Positions 29,401 to 63,974 of a stretch of DNA of 64,000 bases are shown piece by piece. The translations under genes were made by a program, and so were the position numbers. Position 1 is the stretch's first letter. Each line of letters begins with the position of its first letter. The DNA is from Mobula birostris (lineage: Eukaryota), in contig NC_092374.1 in assembly GCF_030028105.1 (NCBI RefSeq), positions 194,055,345-194,119,344 of the forward strand, given 5' to 3'. The notes under the pieces are model-generated. The model was not told where the DNA came from and ran no database searches. It saw only the letters and a program-made list of their open reading frames with translations.

Positions 29401-29443
29401 ATGGAGGTGGGCGCCATTCTGTGCCTGCTGACCGTCTCCTCCG
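29401..29443 (+). CDS. NKp30-like receptor exon 1: signal peptide (MEVGAILCLLTVSS+G)
   Basis: Kozak-like ACGATGG, hydrophobic 14 aa, 43 nt ending in phase 1 at G|GTAAGT. Joins V1 to give ...VSSGIGA/EKF. Confidence 0.85.
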
Positions 29444-30744: not shown

Positions 30745-31083
30745 GCATTGGTGCTGAGAAGTTTGTGGTGATTCAGGACAAGTCCAGCATTGTTGCCACA
30801 GAAGGGGAGACGGTGGTTATTCCATGCAGACACAATTCCACGAGTAAGATATGGTCGTACCACTGGGTCAAGGGTGCCAGAAATGGAATAGAAGTGACCA
30901 ATGAAACAGCAGAGTACAGAGGCCGGTTCCTCAGATTTGAAGGAGGTGAACCCTCCATTAACAGCATAGACGTTTCTCTGCAACTGAAGTACGGGCGGCT
31001 GAGTGATTCTGGGATGTACTTCTGCAAGTTGAAGACAATGGAATTGGAAATGTATGGGGCGGGGACGTATCTCACAGTGAGAG
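30745..31083 (+). CDS. NKp30-like receptor exon 2: Ig V-set domain 1
   Basis: Acceptor CTCCCTGCTTTCAG|, donor G|GTAAGT, 339 nt, phase 1-1. Motifs IPC..YHW..EVTNETAEYRGRF..DSGMYFC..YGAGTYLTV; compare human NKp30 EVRNGTPEFRGRL. Confidence 0.93.
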
Positions 31084-31559
31084 GTAAGTCAACCATCAAG
31101 TATCTCCTTGTCCGTGCGAATCAGACCCACCACCCAAACAGAATTTGGCCAAGGCAGGAGAATGATGGAAACACTCAGCAGGTCAGTCAGCCACTGCAGA
31201 GAGAGAAGCAGTTAAATGTTTAAGTCAGTGACCCATCCTCAGAGCAGGGAAGCAAAAAAAAAAAAAAGAATCTTGTAAACAACCTTTTTTTTACCCAGTT
31301 CTGAGGAATGATCTTCCACTTCAAGCATTCATTCTGCTTCTCATCCTGCAGATGCTGCCTGACCTGCTGAGTGTTTCCAGCATTCCCAGTTTTTACCGCA
31401 GATTTCAGCATCTGCAGGCTTTTAATTTTTATTGTTAGTATTTCACCAACAGGAGAATAACAAAAGAGATTCAGCACAGAAAAAGGGGAGGGTGTGGTCC
31501 CAATTCAAACCTTTCTTCCATGGACTCTGTCTACTGACTTTTTCAGGCCTCAGTAAAAC

Positions 31560-40335: not shown

Positions 40336-40373
<38 letters not shown>

Positions 40374-41355
40374 GTATGTGTGTGTGTATTTATTTATATG
40401 TATATTAAATAGTTAAATTTTAAAATCGTGCAAAAACAGAAATAATTATTTTATAAAAAATGAACAATGATTTCATCCTCCTTTAAACTCTTGTACTGAC
40501 GATTGACAACAAACAATTTTGAATGTTGAATGCATCTGATCTTTAACACTGGGCCTTAATTCTCACCCCAATGGCCAACTTCCAAACGGAAATCATTGAC
40601 ATAAACACTTGGCCTCCACAGCTGTCTGTGACAACAAATCCCAGAGATTAACCACTCAATGGCTAAAGAAACTGCTCCTCATCTCCATTCTAAAAGGACA
40701 CCCCTCTATTCTGAGGCTGTGTCCTCTGGTCTTAGACTCGTCCTCCATAGGAAGCATCCTCCCCACATCCACTCTATCAAGGCCTTTCACTATTCGATAG
40801 GTTTCAATGAGGTCACCCCTTGTTCTGAATTCCAGCGAATACAGACCCAGAGTCATCAAACACTCTTCATATGACAAGCCAATGAAGAGCTTGTCATATG
40901 AGCCCTTCAAAATGCAGAACCCAACCTCGGTATTGGCATATCCACCATCATGGACCAGACTCAAAAACAGACACTTCACCCAATTGTATCAGGTTGACCA
41001 ACACCTCCACCATTAACCCACCCAACCACCACTACATCCACATCAGCCACTCCTCTCCACAGCCCTCAGCACCCTTCCCATGCACTGTCACTTTACAGTT
41101 ACTTGTACATTGTGTTTTATAGAATGGGTGTGTATTTATATATGTCTTTTGTTTTTATGTTTATTGTCTCTTTTTAATGCTGCGTCAGAACTGAAGAAAC
41201 TCTGATTTCATCCTCCTTCAAGCTGTTGTATTGACGATTGACAACAAACAATCTCAAATGTTGAATGTGTCCAGTCTTTAACACTGGGCCTTAATTCTCA
41301 CCCCGATGGCCAATTTCTAAATGGGAAGCATTGACTTTCTCCCTTCCCATTGCAG

Positions 41356-41685
41356 GAAAAAGCAAGAGCTTCACGGTTACGCAAGGTCAGTCCAGTATAT
41401 TTGTAGGTGAGGGTGAAACGGTCCTCATGGTCTGTAGCCATAATGCCAATCACTCTGGAGACACCGTGTTCTACAGCTGGTACAGGAACACATCCGAAGT
41501 CTCCAACGGGACGGCAGAGTTTGCAGGGCGCGTCCTTGGGCCTGACCAGGTGGATTCCTTCAAAGCTTCCATAAAGCTGGTGGATGTGAGAGAGAGCGAT
41601 TCCGGAATGTACTACTGCAAAGTACGGATAGACGGGATTGGCGAGGAAATCGGAGAAGGAGTACGGCTGACCGTCAGTCACACAC
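41356..41685 (+). CDS. NKp30-like receptor exon 3: Ig V-set domain 2
   Basis: Acceptor TTCTCCCTTCCCATTGCAG|, donor C|GTGAGT, 330 nt, phase 1-1. Motifs MVC..YSWYR..EVSNGTAEFAGRV..ASIKLVDVRESDSGMYYCKVRIDGIGEEIGEGVRLTV align closely with NKp30 (EVRNGTPEFRGRL..CRVEVLGLGVGTGNGTRLVV). Confidence 0.95.
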
Positions 41686-42635: not shown

Positions 42636-42749
42636 GCAAAATGAGATTTGTCACGATTCTCCTGGTGATCCTGTTAACGGTCTTTGGAATATCAGGGAGC
42701 ATCCTGCTCATCAGCATCCTGTTTTGGAGAAAAGTACGCAGCGAAGAAA
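42636..42749 (+). CDS. NKp30-like receptor exon 4: transmembrane
   Basis: Acceptor TTTTCCCCCCCACAG|, donor A|GTAAGG, 114 nt, phase 1-1. Reads (R)KMR-FVTILLVILLTVFGISGSILLISILFW-RKVRSEE, a hydrophobic span followed by a basic stop-transfer. Confidence 0.9.
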
Positions 42750-45398: not shown

Positions 45399-45417
45399 AT
45401 TCTCTCCGGGTTCAAAG
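45399..45417 (+). CDS. Receptor cytoplasmic micro-exon 5 (19 nt; N-SLRVQ-R)
   Basis: Long polypyrimidine tract ending CTTCACAG|, donor AG|GTGAGT, phase 1 to 2. Confidence 0.8.
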
Positions 45418-45514
45418 GTGAGTGCTTGTTACACACTTTTGTTTTACAGAATGTGTTCCATTGCAATGTAAAGCGACACACATGGAGTAAACATTTTCCA
45501 ATTTTTCTCTTCAG

Positions 45515-45552
45515 ACAGCAGCTATCAACTCTGAACGACAGCATCACAGCGG
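45515..45552 (+). CDS. Receptor cytoplasmic exon 6 (38 nt; QQLSTLNDSITA)
   Basis: ATTTTTCTCTTCAG|, donor GG|GTAAGT, phase 2 to 1, open. Confidence 0.8.
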
Positions 45553-45863
45553 GTAAGTAAAAGCCCCCAGAGCCAATCCGCGTGAGTGTATTATGCTGAC
45601 TTGTCTGTGATGTTAGTTAGAGTGTCATACAGCATAGAACCTTCCATTCGGTCCTTCTTCTCCAAGCTGACCTGTGGGTACCGATCAGAATTAACCCTGC
45701 TTTCCACCACTTTGCTTCGTGCCCTTGGCAATTCGAGTGTCGATTCAGAATTGCCTTGCCCACAGAGGGGATTCAGAATTTTCTTCCATGAAGAAGGCAG
45801 AGGGTAGTTGTAGATGGAGCCTATTCTGCCTGGAGGATGGGAAACTGTGGTGCTCTGAAGTTA

Positions 45864-46284
45864 TAGAACATAGAACATAGAACAGTGCAGCACAGTACAG
45901 GCCCTTCGGCCCACAATGTTGTGCCGACCTTAAACCCTGCCTCCCATAAAACCTTAAATTCCTCCATTTACCTGTCTAGTAGTCTCTTAAATTTCAGTAA
46001 TGTATCTGCCTCCACCACTGACTCAGGCAGTGCATTCCACGCACCAACCACTCTCTGAGTAAAAGACCTTCCTCTAATATCCCCCTTGAACTTCCCACCC
46101 CTTACCTTAAGGCTATGTCCTCTTGTATTGAGCAGTGGTGCCCTGGGGAAGAGGCGCTGGCTATCCACTCTATCTATTCCTCTTAATATCTTGTACACCT
46201 CTATCATGTCTCCTTTCATCCTCCTTCTCTCCAAAGAGTAGAGCCCTAGTTCCCTTAATCTCTGATCATAATGCATACTCTCTC
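45864..46284 (-). mobile_element. Young CR1 3' fragment, same subfamily as CR1 B
   Basis: ORF 45968..46276 is almost identical to 3946..4386. (ATAGAAC)n tail. Confidence 0.92.
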
Positions 46285-47308
46285 TGTTCTGGGACCATTG
46301 CTCTTTGTGATTTTTATAAATTATTCAGATGAAGAAGTGGGAGGGTGTGTTAGTAAGCTTGTAGATAACATGAAGTTTGTGGAGTTGTGGATAGTGTGAA
46401 ATGGTGGCAAGGATTACAACAGGAAATTGATGGGATGCAGATCTGGGTTGAGAATGGCACGTGGAATTCTATCCTGAAAAGTGGGAATTGATTCACTTAT
46501 GAAGCTTAATTTGAAGGCAGAATACAGGGTGAATGGCAGATCTCCTAGCAATATGGAGAAATAGAGGGATCTTGGAGTCCATGTCCATAGATCCCTCAAC
46601 GTTGCCGTGCAGGTTGGTTGAGCCGTGAAAAAGGCATATGGTGTGTTGGTCTTCATTAATTGCGTGATTGAGTTCAAGAACTGTGAAGTAATGTTGCAGC
46701 TCTGTAAAACCCTTTGTGTATTGTGTTGAGTTGAGCAGAGATGTTAGGAATAAGTTTTTTATTCAGAGAGTGGTGAGTGCGTGGAATGGGCTGCCGGCAA
46801 CGATGGTGGAGGCGGATACGGTAAGGTCTTATTAGAGACTCCTGGATAGGTACACGGAGCTGAGATATGGATGGATATGGGTAACTCTGGGTGATTTCTA
46901 AAGTAAGTACATGTTCGGCACAGCATTGTGGGTTGAAGGGCCTGTACTATGCTGTAGGTTTTCTATGTTTCCATTGAGTGCTCATCGCATGATTATTTAC
47001 CACAATGCTGCCTGGATTGGAGAAGATAGGCTGAGTGTGGCAGGGCCTTTCTCTTCAGAGCGGAGGATAGAGGTGAATTGATAGAGGAGTACAAAATGAT
47101 AAGAGGCATAGATCAATTGGATTCTTTCCCAAGGCTGAACTTGCTAATACTGTATGAGGGGCCATAATTTTATTGTGTTCGGAGGAAAGTATAGGGGGAA
47201 TATCAGAGGTAAGTTCTTTACACAGTGAGTGTGGGTGCCTGTAGGAAGCAGAGAACAATTGTAGACCTGCCAGTGTTTGCATTAATATGCACATAATTAA
47301 TTTTACAG

Positions 47309-47349
47309 ATGATTTAACTGCACTCCAATTGGATGATGGACCTGGGACG
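47309..47349 (+). CDS. Receptor cytoplasmic exon 7 (41 nt; DDLTALQLDDGPGT)
   Basis: AATTTTACAG|, donor CG|GTAAGT, phase 1 to 0, open. Confidence 0.78.
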
Positions 47350-48694
47350 GTAAGTCGTAAAGCAAAATAAAAGCCCGCAGATGCTGGAAATCTGAAATAA
47401 AATCAGAGAATGCTGGGATATTCAGCAGGTTAAACAGCATCTGCAGAGAATCAAGCAGAGTTAAAGTACTGGAATAGTGGGTTTTCAACAGAACTGGGCA
47501 AAATTGAAAATATAGTTTAGAGGAAGGGATGGGTAGAGAGAATAAAAGCGTGGAGAGCGGGAGAGACTGGATGTCATAAGTGGGGATTGCACGCGATGAG
47601 GGAGGACGTGGATAACTAGTTCATTTTGCACAGAAAAGGTTCAAGTGCTCATCTCTGTGTTTTCTCTCTTTTGCGAAAGTCTCTGCTTCACCTTATTTAC
47701 AAGGAGCACTGCCACAAGAAAGGAGCATCCATTATCAAGGATCCCACCATCCAAGCCATGCTGTCTTCTCACTACTAATATAAAGCATGAAGTACCAGAG
47801 CCTTAGGTCCCATGCTGCCAGTTCAGGAACAGTTATTACCTCACAACACGGGTTCCCAGTCTTTTTTTATGCCATTAACCAATACCATTAGGCAAGGGGT
47901 CCGTGGATCCCAGGTTTCAAACCCTGCCCTATAACCATCAAGCTCCTGAACCAGTGTGAATAATCTCACTCACCTCAGCGCTAAACTGACTCCACAACCA
48001 ATAGACTCGCTTTCAAGAACTTTCAAATTCAATATAATTTATTTATTTTTGTTTATTCTAAGTCTTCTTTTGCACTCTGGTTGTTTGTCAGCTTTGTTCG
48101 TCATAGTTTGTCATAAATTCTATTGTATTTCTTCACTTTCCTGTAAATCCTCGCAAGAAAATTTTTCTCAAGGGGAGATACAGTATATGTTCTTCAATAA
48201 TAAATGTATTTGTACTCTGAAGGTTCGGGAAGTGGCAGCACCACCGGGACAAGTACGTGAAAGAGGGGTGTCGTTCAAAACTCTGACAGCAATGGGGAAG
48301 AAGCTGTTCTGGGAACAAAGGGCATAGGACATAGAATGTCAAGCAGTAGAGCACAGGAACAGGATTTCAGCCCACAATTAATGCTGAACTAATTAAAGGG
48401 TTTCTAATTATGCGCATCTCTTCCACTTGTACATGGTTCACTTCCCTCCATTCAGTCCAATGTCACGTGAGTATCTACGATCCTCTTAACCATCTCTATT
48501 GTATCTGCCTTCTCCACCACTACCCCTGGCAGCACATTCCCAGCACCATCACTCGGTGTGGAAAGAAAAACTTACTCTGTACACCTCCTTTAATCTTGCC
48601 CTGTCTCAGCCTAAATGTTGAGTCTGGACACCCAGGCTCTCGAGCTCCTGTAGACCAATAGAAATGCTCATTGTAATATCTTATTTCACAACAG

Positions 48695-48724
48695 GCTCAA
48701 GATGGGAATGCCCCTGCATGCCCG
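48695..48724 (+). CDS. Receptor cytoplasmic exon 8 (30 nt; AQDGNAPACP)
   Basis: TTATTTCACAACAG|, donor CG|GTAAGA, phase 0-0, open. Confidence 0.72.
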
Positions 48725-49579
48725 GTAAGATGGTGTCCTTTTCACTCAGATTGTTCATAAGAAGAAAACTGATTTGTAACAAAATGTCACCAGTTTGATG
48801 TTCTCTTCTTCTCGGTTCAACGTCAGTTCTTGATCCAATCTGCCCAACCCTATTCACTGCCACAGTATGACAACATTTTGCATCAATAGATGAACTCTTT
48901 TTGGTCTAAGTGTGTTCTCTATTGCAAAAATTGTGTGTAATTGATGCTTCATTGATGTTTTCCTTGTGAATGTTATGTAACTGATGCTGTGTGCCTATGA
49001 TGCTTCTGCAAGTCAGTTTTTCATTGCACTTGTGTATACATATGATGATGTTATTGACCCAGGAGAGCTCCTAATCACCGTTATTGACCTAAAGTGACCT
49101 CTGCCTCCTCTGTTGACCCAGGGAGATCCTATTAACTCCACACAAGATCCCAGACTCCTTTCCTAATAAAATCCATGGATATTATTCCATATCTGATCAC
49201 TAAACATTTGGTTCTTTATCCAACCTGCACAACCCTAATCACCACCTCAGTAGAGCAACATTACACTACAATAGACTTTGTATTTGTTCTAATTGGGTTT
49301 TCTCTTAAGTAATTGGAGCCATCGAGATCTGCAACACAAAAACAGGTTCTTCTAATAACGACAATGGCCTTTGAGTGTTATGGACTCGCAAAGTCACTTA
49401 TTGCATGTAAATATTGTTTTTTTTTAAATTAAGCTGTACTACATGCACTGTAAATATGTTTTGCACAGACTGGAGTAACATCACAATCTCCTTGTCTTGA
49501 ACAATGACAATAAAGTTCAATTCCATTCTATTCTTTGACTAATCTAGTCCATGCCAACCCAACACCTGTCCTTACACCT

Positions 49580-50265
49580 CCTCCCTCACCTCCATTCAGG
49601 GCTACAAACAGTCCTTCCAGGTGATGCAACACTTCACGTGCGAACCTGCATGGGTGAGACACGTTGTAAATTGGGGGACTGCTTCGTCGAGCACCTCCTC
49701 ACCATCCGCAAGAAGCGGCACTCCCCTGGTGGCCAAACAGGTTAATTCCAAAATCCCATTCTTATTCTGACGTGTTGATTTATGGCCTCCTCTTGTGCCA
49801 AGGTGAGGCCAACCTCAGGGTGGAGGAGTAACAAATTATAGTCTGTCTGGGTACCCTCGAATCTGATGGCATGAATATTGATTTCTCCTTCTGGGAAGCA
49901 ATTCCCCCCCCTACAAACTTCCTCTATTCTCCATTCTGACCTTTCACTTCTTCTCATCTGTCTATTCCTTCCCTCTGGGTTCCTTTCCTCCTATGGTACA
50001 CTCTTCTTTTCTATCTGGTTCTTTCTTCTCTAGTCCTTGACCTTTCAAATCCACCTGGCTTCACATAACACCTGCCAACTAGACTCTTTTTCTCCCCACA
50101 CCTCACCTTTTAATTCTGGCATCTTCCCCCTTCCTTCTGAGTCCTGAAGAAGGACCTCGGTCTGAATCGTCGACAGTTTATTCTTTTCCATAGATGCTGC
50201 CTGACCTGCTGAGTTCTTCCAGCACTTTGTGTGTGTCACTTTGGATTTCCATCATCTGCAGATTT
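49580..50265 (+). mobile_element. Penelope-like element 3' part (GIY-YIG endonuclease fragment)
   Basis: ORF 49551..49745: GETRCKLGDCFVEHLLTIRKK, then a decayed ..RVEE..GTLESDGMNIDF segment and a terminal GGACCTCGGTCTGAATCGTCGAC..GATGCTGCCTGACCTGCTG. Confidence 0.75.
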
Positions 50266-50499
50266 TCCCATGTTTACATGTTGTGTATGCTTTATGTCTA
50301 ATACATATTTTTCTGTGAATGTTGTGTACCTGATGCTGAATGCCTGTGATGTTGCTGCAAGTAAGCTTTTCATTGCACCTGTACATGCACATACTGTACT
50401 TGTGGATCAAACAATAAACTTGACCTTGGAATTTTAAAAATCTCTTGATGTCATAGAATCAAACATGCATTGGGCGTTCTCTTTCAAGAATCACTTGAT

Positions 50500-51930
50500 T
50501 CTGGCATGGTTGCAGAGGATTAGAAGATTGCAAATGTCACTCCACTCTCTAAGAAGAGAGGAAGGTAAAAGAATGGAAATTGTAGGCCAGTTAGCCTAAC
50601 CCCAGTGGTTGAGAAACTGTTGGAATCCATAAGTCAAAGTCAGCATGGTTTCTGTGAAGGGAAATCTTGCCTGAGAAATCTTTTGGAGTTCTTCAAGGAA
50701 GTTACAAGCAGGGTGGACAAAGGAGAGGCAGTGGATGTTACTTACTTGGATTTTCAGAAGGCGATTGATAAGGTGCCACACATGATGCTGCTTAACAAGA
50801 TAAAATCCAATGACATTAAAGGAAAGAGATATGGATGGATAGAAGAATAGCTGACAGGCAGGAGACAGTGAGTGGGAATGAAGGGGGTCTTTTCCAGTTG
50901 GCTGCCAATGACTACTTGTGTTCCTCAGGGGTCAGTATTGGGACCGCTGCTTTTCACATTGTTTGTCAATGATTTGGATAGTTGAATTGATGGTTTTGTG
51001 GAAAAGTAGGTGAAGGGGTAGGTAGTGCTGAGGAAGCATTGCGATTTCAGCAGGGCTTTGACAAATTGGAAGAATGGGCAAAAATGTGGCAGATGGGATA
51101 TAATGTTGGGAAATGAATGATAATGCATTTTGGTAAAAGGAACAATCGTGCAGACTATTATTTAAATGGAGAGAAAATTCAAACATCAGAGGTGCAGAGG
51201 GAGCTAGGGATCCTTGTGCAAGACTCCAGAAGTTTAAGTTACAGGTTAAGTCTGTGGTAAAGAAGGCAAATGCAATGTGGCATTCATTTCAAGGAGAATC
51301 GAATATAAAAACACTGAGATTATTCTGAGCCTTTATAAGACACTAGTCAGGCCGCACTTGGAGTATTGTCAACAGTTTTGAGCTCCGTACCCCAGAAAGG
51401 ATTTGTTGTCGTTGGAGAGCTTCCAGAGGAGGTTCACAAGGATGATTACAGGAATGAAAGAGTTAACATTTGGCAGCTTTGGGCCTGTACTCACTGGAAT
51501 TTAGCAGCATGCGGATGTGGGAGAATCTCATTGAAACCTACCAAATGTTGGAAAGACCAGATAGGGTTCAAGTGGAGAGCATGTTTCCTTGGGTGGGTGT
51601 ATCCAGAACTAGAGAGCACAGCCTCAGAATTGAGGGGTGACCCTTTAGAACAGTGTAATGAATTTTTTTAGGCAGAGAGTAGTGAATCTGTGGAATTCTC
51701 TGCCACAGACTGCAGTAGAGGCCAAGTCCATGGGTATATTTAAGGCAGAAGTTGATCGTTTCCTGATTGCTCAGGGCATCAAAGGATATGGCGAGAAGAC
51801 AGTGTGTGGGGTTGAGTGGGATCTGGGATCAGCCAGATTGGAATGGCAGAGCAGAATTGATGGGCTGAATAGCCCAATTCCGTTTCTATGTCTATGGTCT
51901 TATACTCCTTTCTCTTATGGTCTTATGATC
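50500..51930 (+). mobile_element. CR1 RT to 3' UTR fragment
   Basis: ORF 50605..50850 (QHGFCEGKSCL..YLDFQKAIDKV) and 51658..51933 (FFRQRVVNLWN). Confidence 0.85.
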
Positions 51931-51961
51931 TGAGACATGGCTTAATTTTCATTCTTTCCAG

Positions 51962-51996
51962 CGACAAGACCAATTGATCTACACACCAATGAAAAA
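51962..51996 (+). CDS. Receptor cytoplasmic exon 9 (35 nt; RQDQLIYTPMK), YxxM/ITIM-like motif
   Basis: TTTTCATTCTTTCCAG|, donor AA|GTGAGT, phase 0 to 2, open. Confidence 0.8.
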
Positions 51997-53199
51997 GTGA
52001 GTATGGATCCAGCCACCGCTAGATTAGTTGGCTTGCTACAAATGGAGCGTTACCCAGGGTCCAGTGTTACACTTCTGTCTGCGTGCTCTATTCAGCAGGG
52101 AAGCAGTGAGATGGATCACCATCCCAAAATGACCCTCTGCTGAGGAGAGTTCATTATCAGGTAATGGTACAATTTTTTGGCTGTCCAGTGAGCAGACTGG
52201 ACCCGCAGGATGGAGCGGTGAAGCCTGGTGCCCTGACAGCATGGTAGGAGTAGTTGGTATTCAAGTTGATGCATTGTATAGTGAGGTTAAGTAGATGATA
52301 GAGCAAAATTGTAGTCAGTGGGATGGGCTGAAGTGTAACATGGGGTCAAGGTCAAAAAGGGTGATGAATACAGGACTGAGATGTTATATTTCAATAGGTT
52401 CAATGGGTACATTTAATGTCAGAGAAATGTACACAATATACATCCTGAACTTCTTTTTCTTCGCAAACATCCAGGAAAACAGAGCAGTGCCCCAAAGAAT
52501 GATTGACAGTTAAACATTTGAACCCCAAAGACCCCCTACCAGCTCCCCCTCCCACGCACAAGCAGCAGCAGGGCAGCGAGTCCCCCCTTCCCCACCAGTG
52601 AAAAGCATTGGCGCCCATCACCAAGCAGTCAAACGTACAGCAAATTATCAATAAAGACACAGACTTGCAGTACTCCAAAGACTACTCATTTACCCGGTAA
52701 CTCGCATGCAACAGGCTCTCTCTTGCCCTAATAAGGGAAGAAAGGTGTCCCTGTTTCACAATGACAGAGGAGGCATAACAAACAACTCACTGATAATAGG
52801 GTTTTAAAAGTCTGTTGTGTCATTTTTTAACCAAGCTCTCTGCCCAAAGAACGTACGCCTCTGGGCACACAGCCAGCAGCTAGCCCACTGCTCCCGATGC
52901 TCCGTGTTTTTCTGCGACGCCTCAGTCAGACACTGACCTTGAATCAACCCATCTCCAGAGCCACGAAAATCTAGCAGCCTGAAGGCGCGCTAGCCTTCCA
53001 GGCCGCGTCCTGGGATATCAAAAAGCAGCTGGTCGTGAGGCCCTGAGAGCGGGTCCCATCCCCACAAAGAACCAAAGTCAGTATGTAACTCCAGGTCAGG
53101 GTCTTCAGAAGAACCTTTAAAGGGAAAAAGATAGAAATAGAGCTGTTTCCGAGGATGCAAGCAAAGGAATCGCCATTTATTGTACATTATACAGAATAA

Positions 53200-55690
53200 A
53201 TTAGATTATCTTTGGCACAATTAGAGATTGGCAGACGTGATATTATGGGCATCACGTTGCTGAAAAATCATAATTGGGAGCTTAAGGATACACCTTGTAC
53301 CAATAGGGCAGGCAGGTGGGGGCAGTAAAAAATGAAATGAAATCCTTAGAAAGCAGTGCCATAGGGTTGGAAGATGTAGAGTTATTATGGGTACAGTTAA
53401 GAAACTGCAAGGCTGAAAAGACCCTGGTGCAAGTTATGTACAGGCTCCCGAACCGAAGCTAGCATGTGAGATACAGATTTCAACAGGAACAAGAAAAGAC
53501 ATTTAACAAGGGCAATGTTATGATAGTCGTGGTGGAATTCCATGTGCAGGTAGATTGGGAAAATCAGATTGGTGCTGGATCCCAAGAGGGAATTCGTAGA
53601 ATGCTTGCAAGATGACATTTTAGATCAGCTTGTGGTTGAACCCAGTGGGGGACAGGTGATTCTGGATTGGGTGTTGTGTAGTGAACCAAATTTGATAACA
53701 GACCTTACAGCAAAGACACTTTGGAAGGCGGTGACTTTAATATGATAAAATTCACCCTGCATTTTGAGAGGGAGAAAAAGTATTACAGTGGCGTAAAGGG
53801 AGTTATGGAGACATGAGTGTGCAGCTGGCCAAAGCTGATTGTAAGGGGCCACTATCAGCGATGATAGCAGAGCAGCAATGGCTGGAGCTTCTAGGGACAA
53901 TGTGGGAAGAACAAGATAGATACATCCCAAAGATGAAGAAGTATCCTAAAGGGAAGACAAATCAACCGGGGCTGACAAGGAAAGTCAAGGAAAGCATAAA
54001 GGCAAAAGAGAGGGCATATGATATAGCAAAACAATGAGATATTAGGGGATTGGGAAGCTTTTAAAAACCAACAGAAGGCATCTAAAATCCATAAGGAGAG
54101 AAAAGATGAAATATGAAGGTAAGCTAGTTCATTCTTCTGGAAAGGAAGGAGGCAGAAGGCGGAAATTATAGGATAGTTAGCCTGACTTCAGTGTTGCAAA
54201 GATGTTGGAGTACATTATTAATAATGAGGTTTCAGAGTACATGATAAAGTAGGCTAAATTCAGAATTGATTCCTTAAGGAGAAATATTGCCTGACAAATT
54301 TGTTGGAATTCTTTAAGGAAATAATAAAGGAGAGTCGGTAGATGTTGCTTACTTCGATTTTCAGAAGGCCTTTGACAAGGTGCCACACATGGAGGTGATT
54401 AACAAGATAAGACACCACGTAATTACAGGAAAGATACTAGCATGGATAAAAAATTGCCAGGAGTGTTGGAAGGTTAGAATAAAGTGGACCAATCCTATTT
54501 GACTGCTGATGTCTAGTCCTGTTCCTCAGGGGTCAGTATTAGGACCGCTTCGTTTCACATTTTATGTCAACAATTTGAACAGCAGAATTTATGGGGTTGT
54601 GGCCAAGTTTGCAGATGATACAATGATAGATGGAGAGAGAGGTAATGTTGAGGAAGCAGGGGCTCTGACAGAATGGGTAAAGTGGCAGGTGGAATATAGT
54701 GTAAAGAAGTGTGTGGTCATGAACTTTGGTAGAAGGAATAAAGGCATAGACTGTTTTCTAAATGGAGATAAAATTCAAACTTTGGAGGTGCAACTTGTGC
54801 AGGATTCCCAAAGGTGGATTATCAGATTGAGTCAGTGGTACGGAAGGCAAATGTAATGTTAGCATTCATTTCAAGAGGATTAGAATATAAAAGCAAGGTT
54901 GTGATGCTAAGGCTTTATAAGGCATTGGTCAGACTGCACTTGGAATATTGGGCCCCATATCTAAGAAAAGATACTTTAGCACTGGATAGAGGAGTTTCAA
55001 GAGAATGATCCAGAATGAAAAGCTTATGGTATGTGGAACATTTGATGGCTCTGGCCCTGTACTCCCTGGAACTTAGAACAAAGAAGGGGAATCTCATTGA
55101 AACCTATAGAATTATGAGGGATATTGATAGGATGATAGCAAGCAGGCTTTCTTCCATTGAGGTTGGGTGGGATTGTAACCGTTTGTCATGGCTTAAGGGT
55201 GAAAGATGAGAAGTTTAAGGGGAACATGGGGTGAAACTTCTTCACTCAGAGGGTCATGAGAGTGTGGAATGAGCTGCCCGTGCAAGTGCTCCACACGAGA
55301 TCGACTTCAAAGTTTAAGAGAAGTTTGGACATGAATAGTAGGAATCTGTAGGGCTGTAGACCTGGTGCAGGTTGTTGGGAGTAGGCAGTTTAAATGGTTT
55401 TGGGCATGAACTACATGGCCAAAGGGTTATTTTCTCTGCTGTACTTCTTTATAGCCCTATGAATATTGAAAGGCCTAGGCAGAGAGGATTGCTCCTATAG
55501 TGGTGGAATCTAGGACCAAAGAGCACAGCCTCACAATAGAGGGATGTATATTTAGAACAGAGATGAGTAGAAATTTCTTCAGCCAGAGGGTGATGAGTCT
55601 ATGGAATTCATTGCTATGGATGGTTGCAGAGGCCAATTCATTGGGTATATTTAAAGCAGGGGTTGATAGTTTCTTGGTTAGTCAGGCTGT
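53200..55690 (+). mobile_element. Old fragmented CR1 ORF2 pieces (EN to RT C-terminus)
   Basis: ORFs 53813..54037, 54509..54856 ([12 protein letters not shown]), 54814..55008 and 55500..55925. Confidence 0.8.
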
Positions 55691-55952
55691 CAGACACCTG
55701 ACCCAAGGCTGCTGCACAAAGATTACACTGGGCCTGTGTACATATCTGACTCCAGGTCCCTCTCTTTGCCCTGATGCATTATCCCATTGTCTTTTGGTAT
55801 TTTGGCTACTCCTGTCTGGGTCATCTCCTGCCCCAGTACTGGCCACAGCGACACAGGTTTATGAAGCAACACATGAGCAGGACAATTCCCCCAACCACCC
55901 CCCTTTGCACTTTATCAATGAGTGACCTCCTTCCCCCTCTTTCTCCTCACAG

Positions 55953-55990
55953 CCTGAAGACTTTCAAAATCTCAACGGACAATGGCATGG
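55953..55990 (+). CDS. Receptor cytoplasmic exon 10 (38 nt; N-LKTFKISTDNGM)
   Basis: CCTTCCCCCTCTTTCTCCTCACAG|, donor GG|GTAAGT, phase 2 to 1, open. Confidence 0.82.
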
Positions 55991-56079
55991 GTAAGTAAAT
56001 CCCCTTGAGTGTGGCTGATGCAAAAAAGGGTGCATCCTCCGAACTCCCTGACACCCCAGTCACTCCTCACCTCAGCAGG

Positions 56080-56650
56080 CCATCTGTCCCATCGGTCCTA
56101 GTTGTCAGCATTACCAACAGCCTGTCCTGGTCCGTCCACATTGATGCTACAGCCAGGAAAGTTCACCAACACCTCTACTTCCTAAGGAAGTATCACGGCT
56201 TGGTAGGGCAACTGCTGTGCCCATGACCACAATGAATTGCACAGCTCAGCACAGCATGGAAACTGGCCTCACCTCCATGCACTCTGTATCTCTCGCTGAC
56301 TTGGCAAAGCAGCCAGCATAATCAAAGATCCTGTCCACCCCGGTCATTGTCACTCGATCCCATCCCATTAGGCAGTAGATACAAAAGTCTGAAAGCACGT
56401 ACCACCAGGATTCAGGACAGCTTCTACCCCACTGTTATCAGAGTATTGAATCGTTTGCTTGTACGATCAGGTGGAGTCCTGACCTCACAATCCACCTCCT
56501 CATGTCCTTGCACCACACTTTCTCTGTAAATATAACACTACATTCAGCATTCTGTTAGTGCTTTTCCCTTGTACTATCTCGATGCACTGACGTAATGGTA
56601 TGGTCTGTATGATGTCTGTACTTCAGTGCAATAATAAACAACTTACCAAT
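56080..56650 (+). mobile_element. Rex1/L2-type LINE 3' fragments
   Basis: ITNSLSWSVHIDATARKVHQHLYFLRK (ORF 56005..56226) and GSRYKSLKARTTRIQDSFYPTVIR (ORF 56347..56529). Confidence 0.7.
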
Positions 56651-56906
56651 CTAATAAGCAGACCAGGGTTTAGAATTGTCTTTGGACGAGAGGGCACTTT
56701 CAACCAGTGAAATCCACCATTTATTCCCAATGCAGAAACCAATCTCTGCACAGGAGTAACCCACAAGGAGACAACAAAAGGAATTAGGAACAAGAATTGT
56801 GTCCTGTGGCACTGTTCACTCCTCCTCACCTGCGCTCTCCATGTTCCTGCCCGTTGCTTTCACCTGTGGCAAAGGTTCACTGACATTCTCGTATTCACTC
56901 TCACAG

Positions 56907-56956
56907 ATGTGATCACCCAGTGTCGACCAGACAACTCGCCGCTCTCCGATGGAGAG
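56907..56956 (+). CDS. Receptor cytoplasmic exon 11 (50 nt; DVITQCRPDNSPLSDGE)
   Basis: ATTCACTCTCACAG|, donor AG|GTAAGT, phase 1 to 0, open. Confidence 0.8.
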
Positions 56957-57120
56957 GTAAGTACATATATAGTAGCTCATATCCTTGACAAATTGAAGAC
57001 CATTCAGCCTGTTCATGTCTGTCCACCCTAATTCTTCCACTTGAACCCCTGCAACCTGTTCTGCCCACTTTCCCACTGGGCTGCTCCTTGTTGGATATTC
57101 GCCTAGTGCTTTCCTTATAG

Positions 57121-57180
57121 GTTTACTTTCCTATGCTTGCTTACATTTTTATGAAATCACCTATATGGGAAAATTGTTCA
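57121..57180 (+). CDS. Candidate optional exon (60 nt; VYFPMLAYIFMKSPIWENCS)
   Basis: GTGCTTTCCTTATAG|, donor CA|GTAAGT, phase 0-0, open. Not needed for frame continuity. Confidence 0.35.
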
Positions 57181-57478
57181 GTAAGTTTTCTAGTAATTTG
57201 AGTACAGCTGATTCTGTATTTTTCTAAAAGCTTCTAAGTCTCTCTGCAGCAGGTATCATGCTACATGAGTTTGTCTATTTTATAGGTTCATTGCTGTCAC
57301 TGGGATGTTGTTATCTCGAGTCTGAATCTGAGGCAATCACCATTTCTTTTTCTTTGTCTTTTCCTTGTGAGTTCATTTTTCTTGTAAATCTTAACAAAAC
57401 GATTGTAGCCACCTACTTTTATGTCTCATTCTTGCCTTTCAAAGAACCTCGATTCTAAATGACCAGACCCAACACCCT

Positions 57479-57951
57479 CAGACAAGAGAAAATCTGCAGA
57501 TGCTAGAAATCCGAGCAACACATCCAAAAGGTTGGAGGAACAGCACTTTAAATTCTGATTGGGCAGCCCCCAACCTGATGGCATCAACATCATTTTCTTG
57601 AACTTCTGGTAATGCTCCCCACACCCCTCTCCTTCACTATTCCCCATTCCCATTTCCCTCTCTCATCTTATCTCTTTGCCTGCCCATGGCCTCCCTCTGG
57701 AGCTCCCCCTTTTCTTTCTTCCATGACCTTCTGTCTCTTTCACCGAGTTACTTCCCAGCTCTTTACTTCATCCCCTCCCCATTCAGGTTTCACCCATCAC
57801 CTGGTGTTTCTCTCTCCACTCCCCCACCTTTTAAATCTACTCCTCAGCTTTTTTCTCCAGTCATGCTGAAGGGTCTCGACTCAAAACGTCGACTGTACTC
57901 TTTTCCTAGATGCTGCCTGGCCTGCTGAGTTCCTCCAGCGTTTTGTGTGTG
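57479..57951 (+). mobile_element. Penelope-like 3' fragment with inverted 5' segment and 14-bp TSD
   Basis: AGACCCAACACCCT at 57465-57478 and 57952-57965. The first ~60 bp are the reverse complement of the PLE terminal sequence. Confidence 0.8.
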
Positions 57952-58548
57952 AGACCCAACACCCTGTACCAAGAGTAGAAGTTGATGTAATTTATTGTGG
58001 ATTAGGGGAATGTTCTGGAAAATTTGTGGCTGGAACTGAGAGCCGTTGCCAAAAAGTTCCGGAGACCGAATTTCAATTTGACTTCTTCTCTCAGCGGGTT
58101 ATGTGAATGCGGAACGAGCTGCCAGTGCAAGTGGTGCATGGGAGTTCAATTTCAATGCTTAAGAGAAGTTTGGATAGGTACTTGGATAGCAGTGGCATCT
58201 GGCATGGATGGCTTTGGTCCGGATAATGGTCAATGGGACGAGGCAGTTTGAATGGTCAAGTAGAATTGGCCCCCTTTATTCAAACCTTCCAACCCACTTG
58301 CCAATCAGCTAATCTTCTACTATGTTAGTATCTCTCCTGTTATACCATGGGGTCTTATCTTGTTAATCAGTCTCATGTGCTGTACTTTTCCTCCCACATC
58401 CCGAAACTGAGCAGCCTGATAACTTGATAGTCCGCTGTAAGTTGCAAAGGTGGGCAGTGGAATCTGGGTCTAGGAATGTGGGAGAGAATATTGCAGGCTA
58501 GCATTGATCTGGTGGGCTGAGTTTCATTCTGTGACACGATGTGGGTGA

Positions 58549-59303
58549 TATTACGTACCCCGGAACGAGTTAAAAGAAACAGCAGTAATGGAACACACCT
58601 GGAGTCTGGTTTTGCTGTTAACTAGCACTATTTTATTAGTAACTACGTAATAAAGTAACATGAAACCAGATAAATCAAACAGGTTAGCAGAGTTTTTGCA
58701 TATATAGGTGTGTAAATACAAAACCCAAACTTCTTCAAAATTAAGTGGTAACTGATACAGTTTTACGATGGTATGTAAACGAAGTCAGTTCAGTTCGTGA
58801 TATTCAGCTGAGTAGAATTGAGGAGAGAAAGAGCTGATTTGTTATCCAAGTAAGTCGATGCCGTCGATCGTTCCGTAGCCCTCCGAATCCTTTAAGGTCA
58901 CCGAATGTGACCATACTAAAGGTACCGTCTTCACGTGGTAAAACTATAAACCCAGGCAAGGGTTAAACACACTGAGAGCTTTCCACCGGTCACTCCTTTT
59001 CCCGCACTGAGAGAGCCACTGGTCGATTCTCCCGATCGATCCACAAAACCCACACGTTTTGGGGCACTCAAAGCTCATCAAGTTTCCGTTTCTTCTGTGT
59101 CTCTGTATGTCTACAAGAAAGCCAGCTGACCTTGTATATATATCCAAACATGCTGAACACCAGCTGTCCAGAATATAGCTCCACCCTTCTATCACCATGG
59201 CGACTCACGAGATGCTCGGTGCCTCTCTCTCTGAACCAGCGGCACACTCTCTCTCTTTTTAAAGGTACAGTCCGTAATGAATAACACTTAGGATTACGTC
59301 ATA
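58549..59303 (-). mobile_element. Solo LTR, Gmr1-type terminus
   Basis: The reverse strand ends AATAAA....GGGGTACGTAATA, like the LTR ends at 796 and 10767. Flanks GTGA/CTGA suggest a decayed 4-bp TSD. Confidence 0.6.
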
Positions 59304-59848
59304 CTGAACGATCTGTAAATAACTAACTGGAGACACAAGAGAAGGCAAATGCTAGAATCTGGAATGTCAAAAAATCTGCTGGAGGAGTCAATCGGGTTGA
59401 GCAGCCTCTGTAGCAGGGAGTGGTGGTGTGGGACATTTCCATTCAAAACCCTAAACCCTGCACCAGGGCTTGGAAGTCGAGATGGCCTGTACAAAGAGAT
59501 GAGGGTGTGTTGGAGGTAACTGGTAGTGGCTGCTGGATAACAGGCTCTGCAGATAACAGAAAGGGGTGGAATTTGGAGGCAAGGGTGGATGGCAGACAGC
59601 TCTGGGAAGGATGGGATATTTGGAAGTTTGGTTGATCGGCAAGCTTGGCAAGATTTTACGAGACGTTTCGGCTACAATCATGTGGGATGTGATTGGTTGT
59701 CGTATCCCTTGGCTCTGGATCTGGCACTTCGGGGAACATCAGGGCAGACATGGACCTGGTCTGATCTAATCCTTCACTGTATTGCCCTGCTTAGATTTCC
59801 ATGCCGATTGTAATAAGATGATTCTAATATAATCCTTTTCTCCACAAG

Positions 59849-59946
59849 GTACCCACTGTAGAGGACATCCAGTATGCAGAGATATATCCAAGTTACTCCA
59901 AAAACCGAACTCCTGCCAAGACATCGGTGGAAGATGGCGATTTGAA
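59849..59946 (+). CDS. Receptor cytoplasmic exon 12 (98 nt; VPTVEDIQYAEIYPSYSKNRTPAKTSVEDGDL), canonical ITIM
   Basis: ATCCTTTTCTCCACAAG|, donor AA|GTGAGT, phase 0 to 2. IQYAEI fits (I/V/L/S)xYxx(I/V/L). Confidence 0.85.
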
Positions 59947-60266
59947 GTGAGTTACTTATGAGTGGCTGGATACATAGGATGACTGAGCATGGAGAATCAC
60001 AGCACAGAAACAGGCCCTTCAGCACAGCATAATCCTCGGACTATGTTGTTCGAGGACGCAAACAACTCATTTCACTGCACAGGGTTCGATATGCACGTGT
60101 CAGGTAAAGATCACCTTTAACTCTGGCGCCAAATCAGAGGTGGAAGGATTGGAGAGAAGATTGGGAGCAACATTTTCACAAGAGTGGAGCGGGAGTCCAG
60201 AACTCCTTTGTGAAAGGGCAGGAGACACAGAAATCTTCAGCACCTTAAACTGAGTGATGTGTGTGT

Positions 60267-60420
60267 NNNNNNNNNNNNNNNNNNNNNNNNNNNNNNNNNN
60301 NNNNNNNNNNNNNNNNNNNNNNNNNNNNNNNNNNNNNNNNNNNNNNNNNNNNNNNNNNNNNNNNNNNNNNNNNNNNNNNNNNNNNNNNNNNNNNNNNNNN
60401 NNNNNNNNNNNNNNNNNNNN
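60267..60420. other. Assembly gap (154 N) flanked by simple repeats
   Basis: N run between (GT)n and a TCTG-rich sequence. Confidence 1.
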
Positions 60421-60689
60421 GTATCTCTCTGTCTGTCTGCCTGTGTGATCTAACAGCCTCTCAAATGTACTTCTACATCAATTTGCACCATTCCAGGCAG
60501 CTACCACTCTCTGTGTGTTTTTAAAAAAAGCACTTACTCCACAATCTCCTCTGAAATTTCTCCCTCTAACCTTAAATGCATTTCCTCTAGAAAGAGGAAG
60601 AAATTGCCTTTAAACTCACGAGAGAACATAGGCCATCAAACTTTTTTGCTGTTGATGTTTCTGTAGCAGGCAATTTCCTTTTTACAAGG

Positions 60690-60813
60690 TTGAGTTACTA
60701 GCTCGACTCTCAACCCAGCACGGGTGGAAAGCTGCCTGAGGAGCCAACTGGGTTCGAACTCGGGAACCTTCGCTCCGAAGTCCAGCGCTGATGCCACTGC
60801 GCCACCAGCTGGC
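60690..60813 (-). mobile_element. tRNA-derived SINE head with A and B boxes
   Basis: The reverse strand has TGGCGCAGTGG (A box, 60794-60804) and GAGTTCGAACC (B box, 60751-60761), followed by non-tRNA body sequence. Confidence 0.75.
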
Positions 60814-61722
60814 TACATTTCCTCTAATATTCAATGTTTATTATAATTATTCAATTTCAATATTAATGAAATAATCAAATTATTAAAGTAATGATAAAAT
60901 GCATTAATATATAACCAAAAAGAACACCAAATGGTCATGTTAGACATGGTTGAATTCTGTGAGTAAAAGTCACGCTGGAGTTTATTGTCATATGCATGGA
61001 TGCAATGAAACACTTAATTGCAGCAGCATCACATAGCATCATTTAAACAGAGTTACACACAAAATGCTGGAGGAACTCAGCAGGTCAGGCAGCATCTATG
61101 GAGAGGAATAAACACTCACTGTTTCAGGCTGAGACCTTTCAGCATGACTGAAAAGGAAGTGGGGTGGGGTCGGGGGGGAGAAGTAAAGAAGCTGGAAAGA
61201 GAAGGGAATAGTGGTGGGGGTAAGGAATACAAGCTGGCAGGTGATAGGTGAGACCAGGTGAGAGGGAGGCTGGGTGGCATTTGTCTGTGATGCGTTGGAT
61301 TTATAGCATCTGCAGAATCTCCTGTGTTTATCGTACTAATGTTATTCTCAAGCAAAGCATACATATATATATTTTTTTCATGACTTTACTCACCTCTTGA
61401 ATGAGTTGAGTAGTTTTGCCCCTTTTCCTGCAGAACAGTGGGTCAGAAACACAGTACTGGGGGAGAGAGCACTGCATGGATGCCTGTTACAAAATGCACC
61501 TAAGGTCTGGCCCCAGTGCAACCAGTGTCACTGTGCACCGGGTGCAGAATGTAATGGTGGGAGTAGGCAGATACACTTGGGCTGCCCCAATGCACACACT
61601 ACAAGAGGTAGATGCTGAATTTCGTAAAATAAAAATTTGACACTATCGCCACAGAAACGAAAAATGCCACCAGCACAGAGTCTGGGTCTCATTAACCCCA
61701 TCCTCCCCACTTCCTTTGGCAG

Positions 61723-61757
61723 GCAGGACTACGGCTACGACGAGCTGAACGTGATAG
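61723..61757 (+). CDS. Receptor cytoplasmic exon 13 (35 nt; K-QDYGYDELNVI), YxxL motif
   Basis: CCCCACTTCCTTTGGCAG|, donor AG|GTGAGT, phase 2 to 1, open. Confidence 0.82.
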
Positions 61758-61789
61758 GTGAGTATCAAAGGTAGCAAAGCATGGTGGAG

Positions 61790-62765
61790 AGACTGGGGCA
61801 AAGGGGATTCTGGGGCTGCATGGGAACTGCGGTAAAATAGTGGGGTTAAAATAGGGACTGGGGTAAGATATTGAGGTTAAAATAGGGACTAGGTTAAATA
61901 GTCAGTGGGGTTAAAGTGGAGACTGAGGGGTTAAAATGGATACAGTCATTAAAATGGAGACTCAGAGGTAAAATGTGAATGGGGTTCGGGGAACTGGGGT
62001 AAATAGTGGGATTAAGGTGGGGACTGGAGTAAAATACTGGGGATAAGTGGGGAATGGGGTAAAATAATGGGGTTGAAATAGGGACTGGGGTAAAATCGTG
62101 GGGTTAAATAGGAATGGGGTAAACTAGTCAGTAGGGTTAAAATGGCAACGTTTAAAATGGAGACTGGAATAACATGGGGATGGGGTAAATATATCAGTGG
62201 GGTTAAAATGAGGATGGAGTGGTTAAAATGGATACAGTCATTAGAGTGGGGATTGAGGTGTAAAATGAGAATACGAGTTCTATGGGATTTGGGTAAAATA
62301 GGCAGAGATGTTAAAATGGTGACAGGAAGCAGGCTAAGTAGGGATTGAGGGGATTGAACAAGAATAGGGATAAATGGGAACTGAGGAGATTAAACAGATA
62401 TGGGGCTAACTGGAGACTTGGGGTTAAATTGGAATGGTGCTAAATGGGGACTGAGGGGGTTAAACAGGAATGGGACTAAATGGAGACTGAAAGGTTAAAC
62501 AGGAATTGGGCTAAATGGAGACTGGGGTTAAACAGAAATGGGGCTAAATGGGGACTGAGGATTAAACAAGATAGGCTTAAATGGGGACTGGGGATTAAAA
62601 CAATGGGATAAAGTGGGGTCTGATGATTGAACAGGAATGGGGCTTAATGGGGATTGAAGATTAAACAGGATGGGGTTAATTGGGGACTAGGGATTAAAAC
62701 AATGGGGTAAATGGGAATGAAGTTTAAAACAGGAATGGGGTAAATGGTGACTGGAATAAATGGGC
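61790..62765 (+). repeat. Degenerate G-rich tandem array (~19-20 bp and ~35 bp units)
   Basis: Repeated GGGGTTAAAATAGGGACTG-like then GGGATTAAACAGGAATGGGGCTAAATGGGGACTGA-like units; C-poor on the + strand. Confidence 0.9.
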
Positions 62766-62934
62766 AGTGGGGGTAAAACATCAAAGGATATAGTGTTGGT
62801 TCCAGAAAATGGCACCAGGTTAGCAGATCATCATCAGTTATCTTAAATGATCGAGCAGGTGTCCTACTCTGAATCTGTCAGTAACATTTACTGATGCTTT
62901 AGATGCCTCATTTGCTTCTTTCTCTAATTCACAG

Positions 62935-62972
62935 CAAAACGTAGCCTCCAGCCTGAAGAAACCACAAACCAG
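62935..62972 (+). CDS. Receptor cytoplasmic exon 14 (38 nt; A-KRSLQPEETTNQ)
   Basis: TTTGCTTCTTTCTCTAATTCACAG|, donor AG|GTAAGA, phase 1 to 0, open. Confidence 0.78.
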
Positions 62973-63848
62973 GTAAGAAAGCAAGCATTTGCTGAGGTCA
63001 GGGCAAGTGGGGAGATCCCGGAGAGATTTGAAAATGTAGCCGAGAAATGTTAAATTGAGCTGTGTTTGGCCCTTAGCTTCAGAAATCAAATGAAGTGGTG
63101 ATTGGGTTAAAATCCATCAGAACATTTTTCATTTCCTGTCCATGTGGCTGGATTATTTCCAATAAGTCCCTGAACTGGAGATGTGAGAGGGGAGATTGAG
63201 TAGATGAGGGGTGTATTCCCTTGAGTCCAGAATAACTAGACGTTCCAGACCATGAGTGTTCACACAACTGTGGGAACTAAAACTGCTCTCAACTGGGAGA
63301 GTGTACATCAGAGGCCACTTGACACAAGTGATTCAGAAACTGCTCACCTTATTGATAAGGACAATGATTTGTGCCTCCCAGCCCCCAGCATGTGCGGGCT
63401 GTGGTAGTAGGATAATCGGCCATTGTAAGTTATCCAATTGCGTAGATGAGTGGCTGAGTCTGGTGGGGGAGGAGCTGACAGGCATGTAAAGAGGGTAAAA
63501 TGTGTGAGAGTAGGATCAGATTGATCATTGGCACGGACACGATGGGCCACAAAACTTTTTCTCTGACCTCATGAGACAAGAGGGACTTTTTTCACTCAGT
63601 GAATTATTGGAACCTGGGGTTAGATTCCACCACAGTGAGCAGAAGGGAGCTGGAAGAGCATCTGAAGGTTGATGGGCTGAGAGTGGAGCAGTGGAAAAAG
63701 CTGGATTGCTTTAGTAAGAGCCAGTGCAGCCTAGATAGGCTGAATATCCTCCTCCTCTGGCTTGCCACTACAGAGGAGTTGTTTTTATCCTCCCAACGGT
63801 TGGGCCACACCACTTAACAGAATTAAATTGGCTCCTCTGTGTTTTCAG

Positions 63849-63974
63849 TAGGAAGATGGGTCCATGAACCAACAGGTCGTGAGGAAGATTGGGAGAGAAG
63901 CACGTCCTCAACTGTGCTGTCAGCAGCTGGGTGATGAATATGGCAAAGATTCCAGATCCTGTTCCTTTGATTGA
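63849..63974 (+). CDS. Probable terminal exon with NAGNAG acceptor: immediate TAG stop, or a 40-aa extension (EDGSMNQQ...SCSFD*)
   Basis: CTCCTCTGTGTTTTCAG|TAG|GAA. The first AG gives a stop in phase 0; the second gives an open frame to TGA at 63972-63974. Confidence 0.5.

Follow-up and report, generated by a model that had tools for sequence, protein, structure and literature searches.

A predicted NKp30-like receptor gene of Mobula birostris with a conserved three-motif cytoplasmic tail built from ten micro-exons

We analysed a stretch of 64,000 nucleotides (nt) of DNA from Mobula birostris (RefSeq assembly GCF_030028105.1, contig NC_092374.1, positions 194,055,345 to 194,119,344 of the forward strand), hereafter the window, numbered from its first letter. 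An initial annotation, made from the letters alone, had described a receptor cytoplasmic tail of ten micro-exons with mixed inhibitory and activating tyrosine motifs at 45399-62972. The plus-strand gene to which this tail belongs, extending from 29401 to about 63974, is very probably an intact type I receptor of the elasmobranch NKp30 (NCR3)-like family, with a tail of about 148 residues made from ten coding micro-exons and a terminal exon supplying the stop. The exon chain is co-linear with proteins predicted for two other rays and five sharks. Its three tyrosine motifs, which sharks and rays have conserved, are a YxxM, a canonical immunoreceptor tyrosine-based inhibition motif (ITIM) and an acidic YxxL.

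The tail exons were searched by scanning AG...GT intervals of the sizes and phases previously proposed, and the candidates were then compared with homologues. For most tail exons the scan left a single high-scoring candidate; the 30-nt exon had two. All ten exons were recovered on the plus strand, in a final chain c1 to c10 of 19, 38, 41, 30, 35, 38, 50, 98, 35 and 38 nt, running through phases 1-2-1-0-0-2-1-0-2-1-0 without a stop. The ten donors are all GT[AG]AG (GTAAGT, GTGAGT or GTAAGA) and each acceptor is an AG behind a pyrimidine tract. The spliced tail used in the alignments had 141 residues, the length of about 148 residues given at first being correct when counted from the end of the membrane helix.

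Relatives were found by a whole-library search with the second V domain (V2), followed by searches with the tails of these relatives. With a database size of 1e8, the spliced tail aligned end to end with the Mobula hypostoma protein XP_062903900 (P0002; 78% identity, E 3e-72) and with a Hypanus sabinus protein (P0153; 72%, E 2e-65), and it also matched proteins of the sharks Carcharodon (P0155; 42%, E 2e-13), Scyliorhinus (P0006, XP_038671255; 43%, E 1e-9) and Stegostoma (P0157; 38%, E 2e-7). The micro-exons c2 to c10 were found by tblastn in the same order and frame as in the relatives. The 19-nt exon c1 was too short to register, and it is backed by the end-to-end alignment with the two ray proteins. 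This homology of the spliced product is the decisive evidence that the exon chain is real. It had been argued initially that such an open chain was unlikely for randomly chosen splice sites. From base counts, we estimated that about 140 random codons of the window's composition would have a chance of roughly 4e-4 of containing no stop; however, open candidates for the 30-, 38-, 41- and 50-nt sizes number 10-24 in the introns. Because so many same-size open intervals let a reader choose an open chain, the open frame taken alone is weak evidence, and homology decides instead.

Exon c1 (45399-45417), entered in phase 1 and left in phase 2, has five of its seven residues in common with the Mobula hypostoma protein and likewise with the Hypanus protein. 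It is followed by c2 (45515-45552; RQQLSTLNDSITA), which lies in the tblastn chain, and by c3 (47309-47349; 77% identity to Hypanus). Exon c4 (48695-48724; AQDGNAPACP) is 90% identical to Hypanus; the other 30-nt candidate, at 48223-48252, had equally good splice scores and no homologue match, and the choice between them was made by homology. The YxxM motif LIYTPM, at 51974, is carried by c5 (51962-51996; Tyr325), and c6 (55953-55990; LKTFKISTDNGM) encodes a conserved LKTF..S block right behind it. Exon c7 (56907-56956) is 80% identical to the Mobula hypostoma protein, and c8 (59849-59946; 88% identity to the same protein, E 1e-13) carries the ITIM IQYAEI at 59867 (Tyr368). The acidic YxxL motif DYGYDEL, at 61727 (Tyr397), is read as DYGYDELN in c9 (61723-61757), the best-conserved segment of the tail, and c10 (62935-62972; AKRSLQPEETTNQ; 92% identity to the Mobula hypostoma protein) has a GTAAGA donor, contains no stop and ends in phase 0. 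Each of the three motifs is therefore in a plus-strand frame and on an exon of its own, as first described.

Upstream of the tail, the leader exon (29401-29443, plus strand like all exons of the gene; MEVGAILCLLTVSS) ends in phase 1 with the donor GTAAGT and was found at 93% identity by tblastn with the N-termini of the two ray proteins. The first V domain, V1, is encoded by a single exon (30745-31083; phase 1-1) with a J-like YGAGTYLTV strand, a Pfam V-set match of E 1.8e-10 and 81-83% identity to the ray homologues. In the same way, V2 is encoded by one exon (41356-41685; phase 1-1) with a J-like GEGVRLTV strand and a Pfam V-set match of E 1.2e-13. The intron of 10 kb between them (31084-41355) is full of retroelement fragments, and tblastn found in it no additional V exon matching the proteins of the relatives. 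The transmembrane exon (42636-42749; 76% identity to the Mobula hypostoma protein) is followed by a GTAAGG donor at 42750. A weak donor, GTACGC at 42734, had been named as an alternative that ends the tail early and yields a short product; it is excluded by the relatives, which keep the residues encoded up to 42750 (RRKLRSVA-NS...), so that the long form of this exon is the conserved one. Spliced together, leader, V1, V2, transmembrane exon and c1 to c10 give 416 codons without a stop or frameshift.

The end of the protein was sought in a candidate terminal exon at 63849-63974, behind a tandem CAG/TAG acceptor (63846-63851) that is the first good one downstream of c10. If the first AG is used, the exon would open with the stop TAG (63849-63851) and the protein would end in ...TTNQ, as does the Mobula hypostoma protein. 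With the second AG (exon start at 63852), it would gain a 40-residue extension beginning EDGSMNQQ and ending at a TGA (63972-63974); the Hypanus protein ends in ...NQ-EDGTVNQ. The c8-c9 intron contains an assembly gap of 154 N (60267-60420), with TG- and TC-rich simple sequence on both sides. The c8/c9 junction across it, ...EDGDL-K-QDYGYDEL, is in frame, and both ray proteins show the same stretch with zero extra residues, so the two sides of the gap are parts of a single gene, correctly ordered and in frame. The N run is not expected to hide a coding exon, and only the length of this intron is uncertain.

We then compared the V domains with solved structures. The four best matches of V2 were chains of human NKp30 (E 1.2e-9 to 1.6e-9), followed by MDGA1 (6.5e-8). 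V1 gave an antibody light chain (2.6e-7), SIRP-alpha (1.2e-5) and NKp30 at only 2e-4, and to judge from these matches it is a general V-set domain. Both domains contain the J-like G-x-G-T/V-x-L-x-V strand inside the same exon, i.e. they are non-rearranging V-set domains, as the NKp30 family requires. The membrane helix, FVTILLVILLTVFGISGSILLISILF, has no charge inside, with K/R just at its outer edge; an uncharged helix is also characteristic of ITIM-bearing inhibitory Ig receptors. The edge residues RKMRF (42636-42660) recall the edge arginine of human NKp30. The other rays and sharks in the comparison have a K in a similar position, apart from the Scyliorhinus model, which has no membrane segment. 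In that model (Scyliorhinus canicula), V2 runs directly into the tail, as in a soluble isoform or a model that skipped an exon.

The shark contigs with the tail-bearing genes also hold single-V relatives that NCBI names natural cytotoxicity triggering receptor 3-like, some of which have ITIMs of the form VQY[ASC][TA]L. Because of the match of V2 to NKp30 and of these single-V relatives, some with an ITIM, we assign the gene to the NKp30-like family as a multi-V elasmobranch member. By descent, it appears to group with the shark NCR3-like genes, an already published family (Kinlein et al. 2021, as cited in PMC12272517 and PMC12227049). Its relatives are in RefSeq as unnamed or misnamed predictions, the multi-V members with a three-motif tail being labelled uncharacterized protein, turtle-like, SIRP beta-like or pIgR-like. 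A search for a named nurse-shark NCR3 protein with such a tail gave unnamed predictions only, and the literature covered on NKp30 in sharks, which did not extend to the primary papers on shark NCR3, yielded nothing about tails.

The tyrosine motifs were compared in ten sequences: the window gene, two full-tail ray genes, five full-tail shark genes and two shortened-tail genes. The YxxM motif, as IY[TALI]PM, was present in eight of the ten, that is YTPM here and YTPM, YAPM, YLPM or YIPM in seven of the nine relatives; in the two others its tyrosine was lost (IDTPM, ICPPM). The ITIM ([IV][QH]Y[AT]x[ILV]) was present in all eight sequences possessing the c8 segment, as IQYAEI here and as IQYAVI, IHYAVI, VQYATI, IQYASI, VQYATL, IHYATL or IQYTEI in the relatives. 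IQYAEI fits the ITIM consensus [S/I/V/L]-x-Y-x-x-[I/V/L] in a cytoplasmic tail. The third motif, GY[DE]ELN, was kept in nine of the ten (as EY[DE]ELN in two Heterodontus genes) and had decayed to DYDDNEMN in one. Of the two tyrosine positions in DYGYDEL, the first is variable (Y, D or F) and the second invariant. Where the motif was kept, YDEL/YEEL was invariant, with G or E at -1 and D at -3; the acidic residues around it are non-contiguous, as in KQDYGYDEL here and in DDLEHDYGYDEL in four of the shark proteins.

The distance from the ITIM tyrosine to the Y[DE]EL tyrosine was 28-30 residues in all eight sequences having both, and 29 in six of them, while the segment between the two is poorly conserved between rays and sharks. 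Per-exon conservation was measured as protein-level identity. Between the window gene and sharks, it reached 7-10/12 residues for c9 in the full-tail sequences (9-10/12 in four of them), 6-9/13 for c6 and about half for c5. It was 0-3/13 for c2 and c3, and c2, c3 and c7 were near background. The block [LV]K[TE][FL]..S encoded by c6 was always found behind YxxM in relatives having this exon. As the motifs and their spacing are conserved while the intervening sequence drifts, the pattern indicates that both are probably under constraint. A second Mobula hypostoma gene (LOC134346461, P0154), with three V domains, is a paralogue whose tail has no c4 and no c6-c8, and its two remaining motifs have both decayed (LICPPM, DYDDNEMN).

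The exon sizes define which parts of the tail can be skipped in frame. Exon c4 is the only single exon that is frame-neutral; if c5, c8 or c9 is left out singly, the frame shifts and everything downstream in the tail is lost. Frame-neutral blocks are c1+c2 (57 nt), c6+c7+c8 (186 nt, with loss of the ITIM only) and a few larger ones. Predicted proteins of the relatives differ by such units. The c6-c8 block is absent from isoform X1 of Heterodontus gene A and from the three-V Mobula hypostoma gene; a c4-like cassette of 14 residues separates isoforms X5 and X6 of Heterodontus francisci gene B (P0159/P0030), and in the same gene the c1+c2 unit, of 19 residues, occurs three times in a row. Among the Heterodontus predicted isoforms, X3 ends after c2 and X2 after c5, X1 being without c6-c8. 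In these predictions, the tail thus varies among relatives by whole units (c4, c1+c2, c6-c8) that preserve the frame in the exon sizes of the window gene. The idea that signalling could be tuned by exon skipping is not supported by these data: the motif exons c5, c8 and c9 singly break the frame, and the frame-neutral units differ only in the predicted proteins of relatives.

The recurring sizes of 35 and 38 nt had been taken as a hint of internal exon duplication, and this was not borne out. Seven exon pairs were tested against shuffles: c5 and c9 are identical at 8/35 bases and the 38-nt exons at 11-12/38, both at chance level. The sole low p-value, 0.008 for c2/c6 with flanks, most likely reflects the splice-site consensus common to the flanks. 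We found also that c5 in the relatives is three residues longer, i.e. about 44 nt (EFQPEDELIY there, FQ/RQDQLIY here, 51953-51996), so that the 35/35 match is specific to the window gene. The shorter c5 is explained by the acceptor used, which sits 9 nt inside the ancestral exon as deduced from proteins of the relatives, the ancestral acceptor upstream being gone.

For the signalling of the receptor, we propose the following scheme. Upon ligand binding, Src-family kinases would phosphorylate the tyrosines of the tail. A tandem-SH2 phosphatase (SHP-1 or SHP-2) or SHIP would then bind to the ITIM, probably with the participation of the Y[DE]EL site, which follows 29 residues downstream. A net inhibitory output is the most likely one in our judgement, and we hold it with somewhat more belief than doubt. 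The YxxM site may in addition recruit PI3K p85, a step in which our confidence falls a little short of even. Other roles are conceivable for Y[DE]EL, which could be a docking site for Src-family, Syk or Nck-type SH2 domains or a sorting signal. An ITIM predicts recruitment of SHP-1, SHP-2 or SHIP, and two-tyrosine docking units are known in KIR, PECAM-1, SIRP-alpha and PD-1. A mainly inhibitory tail was rated likeliest because the 29-residue distance from the ITIM to Y[DE]EL resembles these units. An activating hemITAM (a half immunoreceptor tyrosine-based activation motif, ITAM) would fit the spacing of 28-30 residues no better than does two-site docking of a tandem-SH2 phosphatase.

Several points weigh against the inhibitory receptor and the gene model as described here. 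The sign of the signalling, the use of kinases and the SH2 partners were derived from established consensus motifs. The -2 position of Y[DE]EL (Y, D, F or E) misfits the ITIM rule, and bidentate docking of the phosphatase is for this reason a guess from the spacing by itself. The relatives are computer-predicted proteins that depend in part on the same splice-site logic, so they are not fully independent of the exon chain. The closest Mobula hypostoma protein may be a paralogue and not the orthologue, since its identity is only 76-85% in the ectodomain and transmembrane exons and 78% in the tail. Both candidate protein ends, the one with TAG first and the one using the second AG, and thus the terminal exon and the stop, are inferred. 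Over 55900-61800, three small same-species runs, whose type was guessed, gave repeat-derived contigs only (thousands, of 90-99% likeness) and no exon-border joints; the same runs had zero depth over c7 and c9 and no c8 words, from which no verdict on transcription follows. As a separate observation, a run of a sister species (X8, type guessed as RNA) contained four of seven sampled c8 words, the same share as in the DNA runs of that species.

The initial annotation had proposed a dual-output receptor in which the ITIM inhibits, YxxM and the hemITAM-like DYGYDEL activate, and the skipping of single motif exons adjusts the two outputs. The dual output was read from motif consensus, and we regard this proposal as unlikely. 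It is in line with three conserved motifs on separate exons, with the likeness of GY[DE]ELN to the G-Y-x-x-L-N core of the CLEC-2 hemITAM, with the different tails of the Heterodontus predicted isoforms X3, X2 and X1, and with the 186-nt c6-c8 block, whose removal takes away the ITIM alone and keeps the frame. However, the motifs are not independent cassettes, because c5, c8 or c9 skipped singly shifts the frame. The acidic run ahead of the tyrosine is not a contiguous DED/DEE, and the known hemITAMs belong to type II C-type lectin receptors. The fixed spacing of 28-30 residues between ITIM and YxxL suggests that both sites act jointly, and isoforms of the window gene were not seen in the same-species runs examined.

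Still less probable is a tail whose tyrosines act mainly as trafficking signals, i.e. YxxΦ motifs read by AP-2-type adaptors that set the surface level or endocytosis of the receptor instead of docking SH2 domains by phosphotyrosine. YTPM, YAEI and YDEL all match YxxΦ, and YDEL lies in an acidic stretch as in some sorting signals. The conservation nevertheless exceeds YxxΦ, as it extends to the -2 residue of the ITIM, to the G at -1 and N at +4 of GY[DE]ELN (called invariant, with E at -1 in Heterodontus) and to the fixed spacing, features that sorting signals do not require. That the tail would be a product of chance or decay, either a pseudogene tail or reader-picked exons never spliced together, is hardly credible and, as far as chance is concerned, largely refuted: the silent same-species runs, the introns rich in open AG...GT intervals of equal sizes and a c5 acceptor unlike the one inferred for relatives speak for it, against the E-values of the spliced product with the two ray proteins, 416 codons free of stop or frameshift with ten regular donors out of ten, and three motifs intact here and decayed in the paralogue P0154 (LICPPM, DYDDNEM).

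Beyond the preferred reading of a mainly inhibitory NKp30-like receptor, a bolder one can be outlined, to which we give only a small chance. The three-motif tail would be an ancient module of multi-V NKp30-like receptors that predates the split of sharks and rays. The c6-c8 block would be a droppable ITIM cassette, lost by splicing or by exon loss, making the receptor non-inhibitory, and GY[DE]ELN would be a hemITAM-type site for Syk or Src-family kinases in a type I Ig receptor. If this were true, the primordial NKp30 lineage signalled via its own tail and not via CD3-zeta.

The window as a whole is repeat-rich vertebrate DNA with one N run, that of 154 bases. A tandem direct duplication of about 3.0 kb (24815-26255 and 27821-29253, 84-89% identical) ends about 150 nt upstream of the leader exon, which lies outside it as a single copy. 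Retroelement remains were found at 10.8-15.5 kb, 4308-5855 (minus strand), 8686-9792 (plus strand), 50569-50847 and 54503-54853. They include a Gypsy-like element with reverse transcriptase, RNase H and integrase zinc-finger domains, and several LINE-type reverse-transcriptase fragments, two of them within tail introns.

The gene is otherwise an ordinary receptor gene, with relatives already in RefSeq as unnamed predictions. Its interest lies in a shark-ray subgroup of receptors that have at least two binding domains and their own long tail, in which three tyrosine motifs and one spacing are common to sharks and rays; mammalian NKp30 signals through a borrowed adaptor. The conserved motif trio with its spacing is a useful lead for comparative immunology. 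Tyr325, Tyr368 and Tyr397 offer concrete sites for asking how early NKp30-type receptors signalled, and the frame-neutral exon units give a defined set of possible tail isoforms.

In its layout, the tail resembles those of PECAM-1 (CD31), CEACAM1, FCRL and CD22, which are likewise divided among numerous short exons, their tyrosine motifs lying on different ones; here, ten coding exons of 19-98 nt carry the motifs on c5, c8 and c9. In PECAM-1-type tails, a tyrosine pair about 23-30 residues apart docks SHP-2, and splice variants of the tail exons alter signalling. FCRL tails, which mix ITAM-like and ITIM motifs, are similar in layout to the window tail. In contrast, there is no sequence relationship with this group, the Ig domains are of another type, and the splice variants documented there are only predicted in relatives here. 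The single Y-x-x-L with a glycine at -1 and acidic residues upstream is shared with the hemITAM of CLEC-2 and Dectin-1, and that of CLEC-2 also has N at +4. These receptors, however, are type II and C-type lectin-like, with a contiguous DED/DEE in an N-terminal tail, whereas the window gene predicts a type I Ig receptor with a C-terminal tail, scattered acidic residues and an ITIM 29 residues upstream. CD28, ICOS and DAP10 have in common with it the Y-x-x-M in a short acidic context; their tails are unrelated, and the CD28 family is without the [LV]K[TE][FL]..S block behind YxxM.

Closest by family are the NKp30 receptors themselves. NKp30 is reportedly the one natural killer cell receptor whose orthologues can be recognised all the way from sharks to humans. 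The shark NCR3-like genes have the same type of V domain as the window gene, but the subgroup to which the latter belongs differs from them by at least two V domains and the three-motif tail. Tails of the human NKp30 isoforms a, b and c differ by alternative use of the last exon, with different signalling outcomes (PMC12272517). The window gene and human NKp30 are alike in a V-set domain with a germline-joined J-like strand. In human NKp30, the arginine at the edge of the membrane helix pairs with CD3-zeta. The mammalian form, with a single V domain, a charged helix residue and a short motif-free tail, was not found in the window gene: where human NKp30 has one V domain, the edge arginine and a short tail, the ray gene has two V domains, an uncharged helix and a three-motif tail of about 148 residues.

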